A DNA stretch of 64,000 nucleotides from Octopus sinensis (GCF_006345805.1 NC_042998.1:179180001-179244000), one strand, 5' to 3'. Positions 43,902 to 61,970 are shown, counted from the stretch's first letter. Notes: generated by a model not told the origin, from the letters alone. Translations and numbers: made by a program.

Positions 43902-44036
43902 GTTTATTTTTGGTGGCCTTCTACAGTTTGGCAGTGCTAATATGTGTTCCTGTCTGCTACGTCCAGCTCAAACTAGGGTCACTCTTTCGGTCTGGAACTG
44001 TTGGCATTATAGGGTCAATTATGCCCCTTTTCAAAG
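43902..44036 (+). CDS. SLC6 (sodium:neurotransmitter symporter) family protein, divergent; exon encoding TM2/IL1
   Basis: Acceptor TTTGTTTACAG|, donor AAAG|GTAAGA, 135 nt, phase 1/1; (G)LFLVAFYSLAVLICVPVCYVQLKLGSLFRSGTVGIIGSIMPLFK(G) aligns with GAFL..P...EL.LGQ..G..PLFKG; both intron positions match conserved SLC6 introns. Confidence 0.85.
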
Positions 44037-44579
44037 GTAAGAAATTCCAGTTGTCTACTTCTGTGATGTTTGCTTGTTTTTTCTGTCCTTTTCCAACTGT
44101 CTTTTATTATTCTGTTTTAACTCTGAAATTTAAAAAAAAAAAATAAAGAAAAATTTGCTACACAAATATATAAAGTCTTTGATTTATAAGGGAAAAAAAT
44201 TACATCAAGACATTCATCAAATCATGGAATTTTCAGTTATTTAACCATTGAGCATTTAAATTGACCACATTAGGCTTATATATTCTGCATGTCTTATGTT
44301 CAAACCAGTCAGATTCAGCCTTTCACACCTACCATACAATGGCATTCTAAAAATATACAACCAACATCATTGAAATCTTGAAGCTACAAGGTAATGTATA
44401 GTAAATTCAAACCAAATGCAATAAATAAGCATTATGTTTGACTAAATAATCTGAATGTCAAAGGTTAAAACCATGTTACTGAATTAATATGACTACAACC
44501 AACAATTGAAACTGCTTGTTCATATTACATGCAGTAAATATCATATATGGTTTATATTTTTTTTCAAATTATAGTTATG

Positions 44580-44900
44580 ATACCCATGCTGGTGGCACGT
44601 AAAAAGCACCAGCCAAACGTGGCATCCACGTCGGTGACACATAAAAAGCACCAACTGATTGTGGCCATTTGCCAGCCTCCCCTGGCTCCTGTGCCGGTGG
44701 CACATAAAAAGCACTCAGTACACTCACAGAGTGGTTGGCGTTAGGAAGGGCATCCAGCTGTAGAAACACTGCCAGATCAGACTGGGGCTTGGCACAGCCT
44801 CCTGGCTTCCCAGACCCCGGTTGAACCATCCACTCCATGCTAGCATGAAAAACGGATGTTAAATGATTATGATGATGATGATGATGATGATGATGATGAT
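44580..44900 (+). mobile_element. SINE with RTE-type 3' tail and (GAT)n end
   Basis: Repeated GGTGGCACGTAAAAAGCAC, GGCGTTAGGAAGGGCATCCAGC domain, CCATGCTAGCATG..GATGATGAT tail; related tails at 47550-47672 and 56655-56846 (minus). Confidence 0.75.
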
Positions 44901-46356
44901 GTAGTTACATGACCAATTTTTGTATAAAACATTTCCAGTCAATAAAATCTTACTACATATGTTATGGGCACTTTCGAATTATTGAGACAGCTTCTGTACA
45001 GTTGTTCAACTTGCAGAAATGGCTGCCAAATCTCTTTCATATACTCTGCCACCTTCAAAACATAAGGGCCCGTTGGACTGTATGGTCCAAGTTATACAAA
45101 ACCTAAGGCTGTCAGTGTTGGAACATTTTTGATTAAGATTGAACTGTTCATCCATCAATAACACACACACACACACACACACATTTCGTTTGAGTTGTCT
45201 TCTACCTTTTCTATCCAAAGGGTTTTCAACCCAATATTTACATGCTCATATTTATAGCTTTATTTGCTTCAAGATTCACCGTTTCTAAAAAGAATTTATG
45301 TTGTTGAAGTTTCTAAATTCTTATATCATCAACATATGTATGCATATGAATACATACATACATACATACATACATACATACATACATACATATAATATAT
45401 ATATATTATATATATATATATATATAATATATATATATATACAGATATATACATACATACACATATATATATATACATATATATATATACATACACACAC
45501 ATATATATATATAAATTGGTGTAATGACAAATTACACACACACACACTCATCTCTGTATATATAGATATATGTAGGTATGTATGTGTGTGAATGTGTATA
45601 TATATATATATATATATATATATATATATATATATAGAGAGAGAGAGAGAGGAGAGAGAGAGAGAGAGAGAGATAGATAGATAGATAGATAGATAGATAG
45701 ATAGATAGATACACACATTCATATGCATATACATACCTACATATATCTATATATAGAGAGATGTGTGTGTGTGTGTGTGTGTGTGTGTGTGTGTGTGTGT
45801 GTGTGTGTGTGTGTGTGTGTGTGTGTGTGTGTGGTGTGTGTGTGTGTGTGTGTGTGTGTGTAATCTGTCATTACTCCAATTTTTCCATTAGGAATGTGAT
45901 TAAAAGTGAGCAGAATCCCAAGTTGCTCATTTCTGTCACATTCCTCAATAAGAAAATTGGAGTAACAACAGCTTAAAACCTCAGCTTCAAGTGAATAAAT
46001 ATATTCTACAATATTTATTGAATATTATTTTTGCTCTTGACAGTACATCTAAATGCACATACTTACAAAACTTATACACATATGAATTTATTAATCCATA
46101 AAAGCAAAATGTCAGTGAATGAATAAACAATTGAATTCATAAACAGAAGTAAATGAGTATTTTTTTTTACAAATTGACAGCTATGTTGAAACTTTGTCAA
46201 ACATAACTTTTCAGTTGAGAGATGGGAGAAAGAGAGAAAGCTCAAATGGAACATCATGGGAAAATAAATCAAAGTATACACATTTAAATAACTATAGATA
46301 TTCTATGTTATGCATCTTGTGTTATTTTCTATGCATTGTTCCATTTAAGATATATA

Positions 46357-46787
46357 GGCGCAGGAGTGGCTGTGTGGTAAGTAGCTTGCTAACCAGCCAC
46401 ATGGTTGCGGGTTCAGTACCACTGCGTGGCATCTTGGGCAAGTGTCTTCTGCCATAGCCCCGGGCCGACCAATGCCTTGTGAGTGGATTTGGTAGACGGA
46501 AACTGAAAGAAGCCTGTCGTATATATGTATATATATATATATATATGTGTGTGTGTGTGTTGTGTGTGTGTGTGTTGTGTGTCTGTGTTTGTCCCCCTAG
46601 CATTGCTTGACAACCGATGCTGGTGTGTTTACGTCCCCGTAACTTAGTGGTTCGGCAAAAGAGACCGATAGAATAAGTACTGGCTTACAAAGAATAAGTG
46701 CCAGGGTTGAGTTGATTGACTAAAGGCGGTGCTCCAGCATGGCTGCAGTCAAATGACTGAAACAAGTAAAAGAGTAAAGAGAGAGTA
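46357..46787 (+). mobile_element. SINE family A, full length
   Basis: Complete head, tract and tail. Confidence 0.92.
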
Positions 46788-47170
46788 TCTCTCTATATAT
46801 AAAGCTGAAGTTGTCTGTGTATGGCAGGTTTGGTAGCCTTCAACTAACACTATCTCCTCCGAGACCCTGCGGCGCAAGTTGACCAAAATTGAGAGTATGA
46901 TAGAAGAAGGCTTACTCTACTTTCCGTAGAAGAAAAAATTCAAATCAGACCATGTTAACACCAAAAATTATTTACATCAAAAAGGTGCTTTTTTTCTATG
47001 AAAATCCCTATTTGTTACTATTTTTTGACTGCTGTGTCGCCATTTTTCGGTGTATTTCAACAAGAAAAATGTTCACTTAAAGAGAATACATAATGCAAAA
47101 TTTTTAATTTTCAAAGATCCAATTCTAAAGGGTCAAAACAAACCCAAGCAATGCTGGGCAATACTGCTAG
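46788..47170 (+). mobile_element. Non-autonomous Helitron
   Basis: A|TC start, subterminal hairpin CCCAAGCAATGCTGGG, CTAG|T end, no TSD. Confidence 0.8.
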
Positions 47171-47299
47171 TATATATATATATATATATGGATGTTTGTG
47201 TCTCCTTGTCTTGACACAGTGTGATAGTTGTAAATGAGTCTACTGATATACAAAGCAGTTTCATTCATTTCTATATTCTGGCCATGGGAAAATACTCTT

Positions 47300-47510
47300 T
47301 TCTACTCTAGGCACAAGGCCGAAAATTTTGGGGGAGAGAGGCCAGATGATTAGATCGACCCCAGCATGCAACTGGTACTTAATTTATCAACTCTGAAAGG
47401 ATGAAAAGCAAAGTCGACCTCGGCGGAATTTGAACTCAGAACGTAAAGACAGACGAAATACCGCTAAGCATTTCACCTGGCGTGCTAACGTTTCTGCCAG
47501 CTCGCTGCCT
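47300..47510 (-). mobile_element. SINE family B-related
   Basis: Reverse complement of the head and centre. Confidence 0.8.
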
Positions 47511-60319: not shown

Positions 60320-60800
60320 TTACTCATTTCAGTCATTAGACCACAGTCATGCTGGAGCAATGCTTTGAGGTATTTTAGTCAAATTAATCAACATCAGTAC
60401 ATTCTTTAAAGTCTGCTACTTATTCTATCGATCTCTTTTTCTGAACTGCTAAGTTACAGTGATGAAAACACACCAGCACCAGTTGTCAAGCAGTGATGAG
60501 GGACAAAAAGAGACACAAGACACACACACACACACACACACACTCACTCACTCACTCACACACACACACACACACACACACACACACACACACACTCACT
60601 CACACACACACATACACACACACACGCACGCACACACTCATGGCTGGCTTCATTCAGTTTCTGTCTACCAAATCTACTCACAAGGTTTTGTTTGGCCTTA
60701 AGATATAGAAGAAGACACTTGTCCAAGGTACCACACAGTGGGACTGAACCCACTGAACCCAGGACGATGTGGCTGAGAAGCAAACTACTTACCACACAGC
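60320..60800 (-). mobile_element. SINE family A, divergent
   Basis: Tail, (CA)n and head. Confidence 0.75.
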
Positions 60801-60824
60801 CACACCAACACATATATCAATCAA

Positions 60825-61057
60825 AAGGTGGCGAGCTGGCAGAAACGTTAGCATGCCGGGCGAAATGCGTGGCCGTATTTCGTCTGCTGTTACGTTCTGA
60901 GTTCAAATTCCGCCGAGGTCGACTTTGCCTTTCATCCTTTCGGGGTCGATAAATTAAGTACCAGTTACGCATTGGAGTCGATGTAATCGACTTAATCCCT
61001 TTGTATGTCTTTGTTTGTCCTCTCTGTGTTTAGCCCCTTGTGGGTGGTAAAGAAATA
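60825..61057 (+). mobile_element. SINE family B with 14-bp TSD
   Basis: CATATATCAATCAA at 60811-60824 and 61058-61071. Confidence 0.92.
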
Positions 61058-61194
61058 CATATATCAATCAACTTTCTGTATCTTAGTCTATACACACGTG
61101 CGCTCTTCCCAAAACATGTGTAATGAATATGCATACGTTTATAAATGTATTCATATGCATATCTATATATGTGTGTATATTTGTATACATGTGC

Positions 61195-61630
61195 ATGTGT
61201 TTGGATATGCGCTTGTGTGTGTGCATGTATTTGTGTGTGTGTGTGTTTGTGTTTGTGTGTGTGTGCATGTGTTTGTGTGTGCGTGTGTGTGTGTGTGCAT
61301 GTGTTTGTGTGTGTGTGTTTGTGTGTGTGTTTGTGTGTGTATGTGTGTTTGTGTGTGTGTGTGTGTTTGTGTGTGTGTTTGTGTGTGTTTGTGTGTGTAT
61401 GTGTGTTTGTGTGTGTGTGTTTGTGTGTGTGTTTGTGTGTTTGTGTGTGTTGTGTGTGTGTGTGTGTGTTTGTGTGTGTGTGTGTGTTTGTGTGCGTGTG
61501 TGTTTGTGTGTGTGTGTGCGTGTGAGTGTGTGAGTGTGTGTGCTTGTGTGTGTGTGTGTGCGTTTGTGTGTGTGTGTGTTTGTGTGTGTATGTGTGTGTG
61601 TGTGTGTATGTGTGTGTGTGTTTGCATGTG
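61195..61630. repeat. Degenerate (GT)n/(GTTT) array
   Basis: Directly visible. Confidence 0.95.
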
Positions 61631-61836
61631 CGAATATGCATATGCATATCTCTTCTGCAAGCTAAATCACATATGACAGATATTAGCTCAGCATCTAAGT
61701 GCAGTAAACCAAAGTGATACAAAGAACTAGTTATTTGTCAGCCTTCCAGCAAAATGCTCATATATCTTGTGTATCTATCAATTACATTACTTACAGAAAA
61801 CGGAACTCTTGCTGACTGTTTTCCTCTTCCTCCTAG

Positions 61837-61970
61837 GGATTCAAATCACTTTCTTTTAGCTTCTAAAAGCCTCCCATCTCATCTGCCATGCAACCTTGAC
61901 AACTCCGACAGTAACAACAGCACTGCCTTTGAATATAGCACTGCCTCAACTGTTACATGTAATTATGCAT
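61837..61970 (+). CDS. SLC6 family protein, probable EL2 exon (3' boundary 61958 or 61970)
   Basis: Acceptor TTTTCCTCTTCCTCCTAG| gives phase-2 TG|G = Trp; WDSNHFLLASKSLPSHLPCNLDNSDSNNSTAFEYSTASTVT has N-glycosylation sequons typical of EL2; donors GTAATT (61959) or GTATGT (61971). Confidence 0.55.

Follow-up and report, generated by a model that had tools for sequence, protein, structure and literature searches.

A divergent SLC6-family gene of Octopus sinensis with remodelled ion sites, from a conserved clade seen here in spiralians only

A 64,000-nt stretch of the Octopus sinensis genome (GCF_006345805.1, NC_042998.1:179180001-179244000; termed the window, and numbered from its first letter) carries on its + strand exons 2-4 of a divergent SLC6 gene, the introns of which are long and filled with repeats. 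The locus is an intact, spliced and conserved gene of the SLC6/SNF family, and it is a member of a conserved clade, seen here in spiralians only, and no isolated cephalopod oddity. Na+/Cl- coupling is the textbook property of SLC6 transporters, which are also major drug targets, and their ion sites are treated as hallmarks of the family. Judged from its residues, the octopus protein is, on balance, an orphan SLC6 with a non-canonical function, and probably a Na+/Cl--independent carrier. A preliminary description of the window had assembled the gene from three pieces: a peptide for transmembrane helix (TM) 2, one for TM3, and a third piece, DSNHF. The first two are exact matches on the + strand (frame coordinates 43901-44038 and 54995-55135) and are real exons with canonical splice sites. 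The beginning of the proposed spliced frame was thus placed correctly at 43902, whereas its third piece, and with it the end coordinate, gives way to a different fourth exon. The exons of the gene model are as follows.

43902-44036 (135 nt), + strand: exon 2 (TM2), encoding (G)LFLVAFYSLAVLICVPVCYVQLKLGSLFRSGTVGIIGSIMPLFK(G); entry phase 1, exit phase 1
54993-55134 (142 nt), + strand: exon 3 (TM3 and the start of extracellular loop 2, EL2), encoding (G)AGIALLIMTYIRCLMFSVEMSYGLFYTFASLQQPFPWSLSKYNKTL(W); exit phase 2
60203-60250, + strand: exon 4, the true continuation, in which the first G completes the Trp codon and is followed by PSIIGIYDSGADRYL and the AA of an Asn codon; exit phase 2
33207-33388, + strand: predicted alternative first coding exon of RefSeq model XP_029658307.2, MFPNVMGAEPLF...NYVPS; tblastn match to residues 1-61 of P0170 (100%)
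42088-42104, + strand: 17-nt mini-exon of the same RefSeq model, ag^G TCT GAT ATC AAC ATT A^gt (carets mark splice junctions), with SDINI as residues 62-66 of P0170

Exons 2 and 3 are bounded by canonical AG/GT junctions (ttacag^GTTTA...CAAAG^gtaaga and tttcag^GAGCA...TTATG^gtatgt, respectively), with a Gly codon split across the exon 2/3 junction and a Trp codon (TG^G) across exon 3/4. Against a hidden Markov model (HMM) of the clade, exon 2 scores 60.3 bits (E=1.6e-17) and exon 3 scores 51.0 bits (E=1.1e-14). The exon 2 peptide is identical in the O. sinensis (P0170) and O. vulgaris (P0172) models, and exon 3 holds R104, F108 and E111 (O. vulgaris numbering) together with an N-K-T sequon. 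The peptide of exon 4 was located at 60204-60251 with tblastn of the O. sinensis and Argonauta proteins, and the exon itself (60203-60250) has the junctions ttacag^G CCA...TTA AA^gtaagt. After ...KYNKTLW, all orthologs, the spliced cuttlefish-like mRNAs included, read PSIIGIYDSGADRYLN or its homolog, and the real octopus EL2 is PWSLSKYNKTLWPSIIGIYDSGADRYLNLDVLERTEHIGESGT. The intron phases, earlier described as family-typical, are common to the Haliotis ortholog and to a Trichoplax SLC6 gene. Phase-1 introns at GG(G/A)^AF and KG are found in octopus, in the Haliotis ortholog and in the canonical Trichoplax gene; a phase-2 intron in Asn after (EF/RY)(W/L) is common to octopus and Trichoplax ('DEFW-N'), and the Haliotis ortholog also has the phase-2 intron within EL2. 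Since the conserved Trichoplax intron corresponds to the exon 4 donor, it lends independent support to exon 4.

Membership of the SLC6 family is evident from profile, pairwise and structural comparisons. The joined exon 2 and 3 peptide matches the Pfam SNF family (PF00209) with 48.8 bits (E=5.7e-13) over profile positions 37-121, which cover TM2-TM3. Full-length clade members reach 49-148 bits against the same profile, for which the curated threshold is 27 bits, and the product of a cuttlefish-like mRNA was flagged as PF00209; scores in this range are, in our experience, weak for full-length SLC6 proteins. The exon 2 and 3 peptide aligns gap-free to B0AT1 (7e-13), SIT1, PROT, SERT and GAT1 (the first four in PDB), and the TM2-TM3 alignment is anchored on the invariant P63, G72, P88, K91-G92 and P-W. 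The alignment of the O. vulgaris protein with human GAT1 extends over the whole 12-TM core (residues 21-545 vs. 52-569, E=1.9e-27). An AlphaFold2 model of the Argonauta ortholog, calculated from a 40-sequence alignment that included canonical SLC6 sequences, reached a mean predicted local distance difference test (pLDDT) of 83.2 and a predicted TM-score (pTM) of 0.84. In this model TM1 is broken (helices 19-29/31-35/37-45), as is TM6 (262-276/282-288). The matches listed by Foldseek for the Argonauta model were all SLC6 structures (probability 1.00, target-normalised TM-score 0.72-0.81, ~20% identity). The octopus gene product is predicted to take the 12-helix LeuT/SLC6 fold.

The hallmark residues were mapped with two independent alignments, one pairwise from HMMER and one from MAFFT that combined 13 clade members with 6 canonical proteins, and are given below in human GAT1 numbering.

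TM1, Na1 site: GAT1 N66, Octopus G34
TM1, extracellular gate Arg: GAT1 R69, Octopus S37
TM1 motif: canonical GLGNVWRFPY, Octopus GYSGLTSFPY
TM2, Cl- site: GAT1 Y86, Octopus F53
TM2 Glu (SERT E136): GAT1 E101, Octopus Q68
TM2: GAT1 S103, Octopus K70
TM3 (SERT I172): GAT1 L136, Octopus R104
TM3 (SERT Y175): GAT1 Y139, Octopus M107
TM3 (SERT Y176, LeuT Y108): GAT1 Y140, Octopus F108
TM3 (SERT I179): GAT1 I143, Octopus E111
TM6, Cl- site: GAT1 Q291, Octopus M
TM6, Na1/Cl- sites: GAT1 S295, Octopus S, the sole ion-site side chain kept
TM7, Na1 site: GAT1 N327, Octopus L (HMMER) or Y (MAFFT)
TM7, Cl- site: GAT1 S331, Octopus G or P
TM8, Na2 site: GAT1 D395, Octopus L
TM8, Na2 site: GAT1 S396, Octopus H
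TM10, gate Asp (LeuT R30-D404 pair): GAT1 D451, Octopus N

The TM2 and TM3 replacements first noted by comparison with human SERT (ELALGQ to QLKLGS, YYN to MFS, Y176 to F, I172 to R and I179 to E) are upheld by both alignments, and the gap-free SERT mapping adds Q141 to S, N177 to S, and PWSLS in place of PW..C. Proper alignment does not restore the motifs; HMMER and MAFFT instead agree on substitutions in TM1, TM2, TM3, TM6 and TM8, so that the loss, as read from aligned residues, is far wider than TM2 and TM3 and amounts to a wholesale remodelling of the ion sites, the TM2 Glu, the TM3 Tyr and the gate. In Octopus, S295 alone is retained among the Na1 side chains (N66, N327, S295), and likewise among those of the Cl- site (Y86, Q291, S295, S331). 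The Na2 residues D395 and S396 are not kept in place by any clade member (13 sampled); one unionid sequence has Ser at position 396. Gln takes the place of the TM2 Glu in 12 of 13 members, and a Lingula protein has Leu there. At the position of the TM3 Tyr, Octopus and Argonauta have Phe, and the other members have His, Gly, Glu, Asp, Gln, Ile or Met. The gate salt bridge is lost in Octopus, with the Arg kept in Lineus; the gate Asp, like the TM2 Tyr, survives in a few of the sampled members.

In place of the canonical motifs, the clade has its own: W-NLxQ (TM1a), VQxKxG (TM2), GLWxGxxPxxG (TM6), PH (TM7), APY(I/L) after TM7, and a His in TM8. P-x-x-K-G is a further signature, the molluscan subgroup is marked by YIR(S/C)L..E(M/L)SY, and the window encodes VQLKLG, PLFKG and YIRCLMFSVEMSY. 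R104 and E111 are conserved in all molluscs of the gene's subgroup. The EL2 disulfide cysteines (PWxxC...WNxxxC) had been reported as absent, and they are: the true exon has none, whereas the DSNHF piece contains several. The pair is missing from the mollusc, annelid and nemertean members of the gene's subgroup and is kept in both Lingula proteins and in a second subgroup (Sepia, Solemya, unionid), so that its loss is secondary.

Relatives were collected by exhaustive HMMER and profile searches; a word-indexed search with the 93-aa peptide had given one exon fragment only. The O. sinensis RefSeq protein XP_029658307.2 (P0170), "GABA transporter 1-like", is identical over the window exons, and orthologs are present in O. 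vulgaris (CAI9717206.1, P0172), O. bimaculoides (XP_014777554.1, P0173) and Argonauta hians (P0169), as well as in the form of a 623-aa protein from RNA assemblies (P0168, P0176), the 90% cluster of which includes a Sepia pharaonis fragment. Wider relatives come from Haliotis, Mya, Magallana, Lineus, Capitella and Lingula, and the second subgroup comprises proteins of Sepia, Solemya, unionid bivalves and Lingula. By group, the members are cephalopod, gastropod (Haliotis, Physella and a chimeric Bulinus model), bivalve (Mya, Magallana, Sinanodonta, Potamilus, Solemya), nemertean (Lineus), annelid (Capitella) and brachiopod (Lingula, two genes). The source-checked divergent relatives among the best 150 library representatives are all spiralian, some short fragments being left unchecked. 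In a neighbour-joining (NJ) tree with canonical SLC6 proteins, all 100 bootstraps recover a single clade of the 13 sampled divergent proteins, and 99 of 100 place the molluscan orthologs of the gene together.

Several observations on individual members may be added. The cuttlefish-like data contain at least 2 paralogs, P0168 and P0142/P0184 (599 aa, Sepia pharaonis and RNA assemblies), the second of which is more divergent and keeps the EL2 Cys pair. O. vulgaris CAI9717206.1 has ~215 extra C-terminal residues (~622-837) that are not in other orthologs and probably represent a fused downstream gene. Bulinus truncatus KAH9509554.1 (P0004) looks chimeric, with TM2-TM3 SLC6 exons joined to a rhodopsin-type G-protein-coupled receptor (Pfam 7tm_1).

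The database names of clade members vary by species (GAT1-like, GAT3, taurine transporter, XTRP3-like, B(0+)-like, proline transporter-like, ine), and this disagreement is taken as a sign of automatic naming by similarity. No paper on the clade was found in the literature on cephalopod, lophotrochozoan or bivalve SLC6 or under member accessions. The gene is thus already in RefSeq/GenBank under similarity-derived names but uncharacterised, and as no characterised ortholog was found, the term 'orphan' is fair. The preliminary description had used this term, and was right about the family, the loss of hallmarks and the lack of a characterised ortholog; its suggestion of a novel substrate or a non-transport role fits the residues and stays a suggestion.

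What the protein does can be approached from the residues that it has lost and from those that it has kept. Since Na1, Na2 and most of the Cl- site are gone, along with the TM2 Glu, canonical ion-coupled symport is very unlikely, and Na+/Cl--coupled symport has probably been given up in the octopus protein. In human SERT, the equivalent Glu136 is described as a member of a conserved network, for which a role in the control of transport has been proposed (PMC3680404, citing Korkhov 2006). The octopus protein would most likely still be a carrier for some small solute, working as a facilitator or exchanger or coupled to protons; a carrier with different energetics is favoured because conservation within the clade is strongest in the cavity-lining helices and because TM1 and TM6 stay unwound in the model. 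Charged or titratable side chains of the protein itself may replace the bound ions, and candidates for such stand-ins, with a hypothetical placement in the ion sites, are Lys70 of TM2, Arg104 and Glu111 of TM3 and the His residues of TM6, TM7 and TM8. Such a replacement would parallel the Na2-equivalent Lys of ApcT and BasC and the Arg of CaiT; in Na+-independent carriers of the LeuT fold, a basic residue (Lys or Arg) occupies the Na2-equivalent position (PMC6472337). Extended to the clade, the proposal is that a whole SLC6 subfamily dispenses with Na+/Cl- coupling, as ion-independent or proton/His-coupled carriers or as transport-dead sensors, with fixed Lys, Arg or His in the place of ions. 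The prospects of this wider claim appear evenly poised. It would, to our knowledge, be the first animal SLC6 branch of such a kind.

The main rival explanation holds that the SLC6 fold was kept and transport lost, the protein serving as a ligand sensor ('transceptor'), as a scaffold or as a regulatory subunit of another membrane protein. Both ion sites, both gate partners and the TM2 Glu associated with the conformational switch are gone in octopus and its closest relatives, as such a role would allow, and the C-terminal tails are long and conserved, most with a hydrophobic end (-ADV, -VRV, -ECV, -VKV) that resembles a PDZ-type ligand. On the other hand, the cavity helices TM1, TM3, TM6 and TM8 bear the most conserved motifs of the clade, although a sensor would need a binding site too, and the unwound TM1 and TM6 of the model are what is expected of a working binding or translocation site. 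We know of no SLC6 member that has been described as non-transporting. Loss of transport is considered unlikely, though it is the rival to be taken most seriously.

Far less credible is the proposal that the protein is an ordinary Na+/Cl--dependent transporter, as its database names say, and that the loss of motifs is an artefact of alignment. The automatic RefSeq/GenBank names (GAT1-like, taurine transporter, XTRP3-like) would agree with it, as would the fact that the best structure and sequence matches are canonical transporters. However, these names differ by species, as similarity-derived names do, the gap-free anchoring of TM2-TM3 and the concurrence of HMMER and MAFFT leave little room for misalignment, and the full-length SNF scores are, in our experience, low for the family.

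Several points weigh against the favoured reading of a Na+/Cl--independent carrier from a distinct clade. The canonical SLC6 sequences in the AlphaFold alignment make the model lean to their fold, and a clade-only alignment of 5 sequences gave a pLDDT of 35, that model being discarded. In TM7, HMMER and MAFFT disagree on the residue equivalences by 1-2 positions. Because R104 and E111 are absent in Lineus and Lingula, and Capitella keeps the Arg only, this pair is not a universal mechanism of the clade. The NJ tree, built of very divergent sequences, could suffer from long-branch attraction. Finally, the O. sinensis RefSeq model lacks TM1, and an isoform with a different N-terminus may exist.

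The TM1 exon (MTEDLTFVCREATPVRWNLLQFALICSYTVGYSGLTSFPYYLVRHT in O. vulgaris) was not found in the window with a small HMM of canonical TM1 sequences, with the clade HMM, with an N-terminal clade HMM or with tblastn of the Argonauta, Sepia-like and Octopus proteins, all of which gave chance-level matches only (best E=0.3-0.7). It was concluded that the TM1-encoding exon 1 either precedes the window or falls within the assembly gap (100 N) at 27400-27499. Since intron 1 of the Haliotis rubra ortholog, which matches octopus in intron positions and phases, spans 46.5 kb, an octopus exon 1 lying >43.9 kb upstream of exon 2 would be unremarkable. In XP_029658307.2, the place of the TM1 exon of the O. 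vulgaris, Argonauta and cuttlefish-like proteins is taken by the 61-aa exon at 33207-33388 and the mini-exon at 42088-42104, which links it to exon 2. The 61-aa exon is non-homologous to TM1, matches no Pfam family and is single copy within the window. These 5' exons could be the product of an alternative promoter that yields a TM1-less isoform, or an artefact of the gene model.

Expression and constraint bear on whether the locus is functional at all. Six RNA-assembly contigs of ~2.6 kb each carry an unbroken 623-aa open reading frame (ORF) with untranslated regions, which indicates that the homologous exons are co-spliced and expressed in a decapodiform cephalopod. The window exons are protein-identical to the models of three Octopus species, and their peptides share 80% identity, within the aligned part, with P0168, the product of the cuttlefish-like mRNA. 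Between exons 2-4 and this cuttlefish-like mRNA (Nei-Gojobori, 106 codons), the nonsynonymous distance (dN) is 0.147 and the synonymous distance (dS) is saturated, for a ratio of ~0.08 and a pN/pS of 0.20; for exon 3 alone, dN/dS is 0.13. A genomic contig with the same exon 3 peptide as the cuttlefish-like mRNAs matches the window over exon 3 only (78% at the nucleotide level), with conserved splice sites, and an N-X-S/T sequon is kept in EL2 (NKT in Octopus, NIS in the Sepia-like mRNA, NMS in Haliotis). Purifying selection on the gene is clear, with dN/dS at about 0.1-0.2 between octopus and cuttlefish, far from 1. That the locus might be a decaying pseudogene, or a fragment made of chance ORFs in repeat-rich DNA, is most improbable on these data: the missing TM1 exon and the crowding of the window with SINE-like copies, microsatellites and transposon debris could be cited for it, but the splice sites are canonical and conserved, and the TM1 exon is present in the O. 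vulgaris model and its absence from the window is explained by the 46.5-kb first intron of Haliotis.

The DSNHF piece (61837-61970) was ruled out as an exon, and there is scarcely any chance that it is a real octopus-specific alternative exon that extends EL2: although it has a good polypyrimidine tract, an acceptor (ctcctag^G) at 61837 in the right phase and GT donors at 61959 and 61971, splicing at either donor would leave it with a length of 2 mod 3 and break the downstream frame, it is missing from all annotated or transcript-derived orthologs, the clade HMM has no significant match there, and ORFs of this size are common by chance in the repeat-rich window (84 ORFs of >=90 aa).

The remainder of the window consists largely of repeats. 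A repeat of ~290 bp that resembles a short interspersed nuclear element (SINE) is present in 17 copies of >=150 bp, on both strands and at 69-95% identity, usually beside a microsatellite, and it makes many spurious ORFs (...SVSVYQIHSQGIGRPGAIAEDTCPRCHAVGLN...). With ARAGORN, no tRNA-like head was found on this repeat in the window. An ORF within intron 2 has a sub-threshold match to zf-RVT (E=0.002, 19 bits vs. a cut-off of 27.5) and is probably the C-terminal remnant of a non-long-terminal-repeat retrotransposon ORF2; Pfam scans of the other long ORFs in the window gave nothing beyond this match. By the N gap are two adjacent ORFs (..GVITSDGDVMPSFIFPHGL..QQDTAPSH.. and ..NSPDWNRLDYYVW..) without a match in the Pfam scan, which we take to resemble the C-terminal DDE half of a frameshifted Tc1/mariner transposase. 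The tandem arrays include a ~37-bp satellite (AAAATTTTCG-type, ~30 copies), a 482-bp repeat (2.2 copies), a 212-bp repeat (2.2 copies), ~900 bp of (ACAT)n, and long (TGG/TGA)n and (GAA)n tracts.

1197-1478, 18337-18630, 22401-22700, 37599-37898, 46350-46637, 49550-49837 and 62230-62498: examples of SINE-like copies
51166-51495, - strand: ORF with the sub-threshold zf-RVT match
26835-27278, - strand: two adjacent ORFs by the N gap 27400-27499
9961-11169, 35265-36313, 59461-59929, 17242-18139, 30941-31784 and 32040-32320: tandem arrays

A conserved and expressed animal subfamily that keeps the fold and replaces nearly all ion sites is a natural experiment on the LeuT/SLC6 scaffold without ions. 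In molluscs, annelids and their allies, the clade could also point to a sensing role or to a new class of substrate. In addition, the present database names (for example GAT1-like, taurine transporter and XTRP3-like) mislead and could contaminate inventories of neurotransmitter systems in cephalopod single-cell atlases.

Compared with the canonical SLC6 transporters (GAT1, SLC6A1; B0AT1, SLC6A19; SIT1/XTRP3, SLC6A20; PROT, SLC6A7; SERT, SLC6A4; and Drosophila DAT), the octopus protein is homologous over the 12 TMs of the SNF domain and shares the TM1a Trp, the TM2 Gly, the P..KG loop, the PW at the start of EL2, the TM6 glycines, the positions and phases of introns and, as modelled, the fold. 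In contrast, identity is at ~20-25%, GLGNVWRFPY is gone, the EL2 disulfide is lost in the octopus gene, and other residues stand in place of the TM2 Glu, TM3 Tyr, TM1 gate Arg and the side chains of Na1, Na2 and Cl- (one Ser excepted). Among the SLC6 homologs that lack an assigned substrate are Drosophila blot and bedraggled and mammalian NTT4/NTT5. These were not among the closest 150 library representatives, and no direct comparison with them was run. A possible analogy is offered by ApcT, GkApcT, BasC and the LATs, and CaiT, which are LeuT-fold proteins free of bound Na+, with a basic side chain (Lys or Arg) in the position equivalent to Na2 (PMC6472337). As judged from sequence, the octopus protein would resemble such ApcT-type carriers in that its Na sites are gone and its core helices have acquired Lys, Arg and His; unlike it, ApcT, BasC and CaiT are members of the APC and BCCT families, with no sequence kinship detectable here. 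The position of the charges also differs, as the basic residue of ApcT, GkApcT, BasC and CaiT lies in TM5 (PMC6472337), whereas the new charges of the octopus protein lie in TM2, TM3 and TM8.

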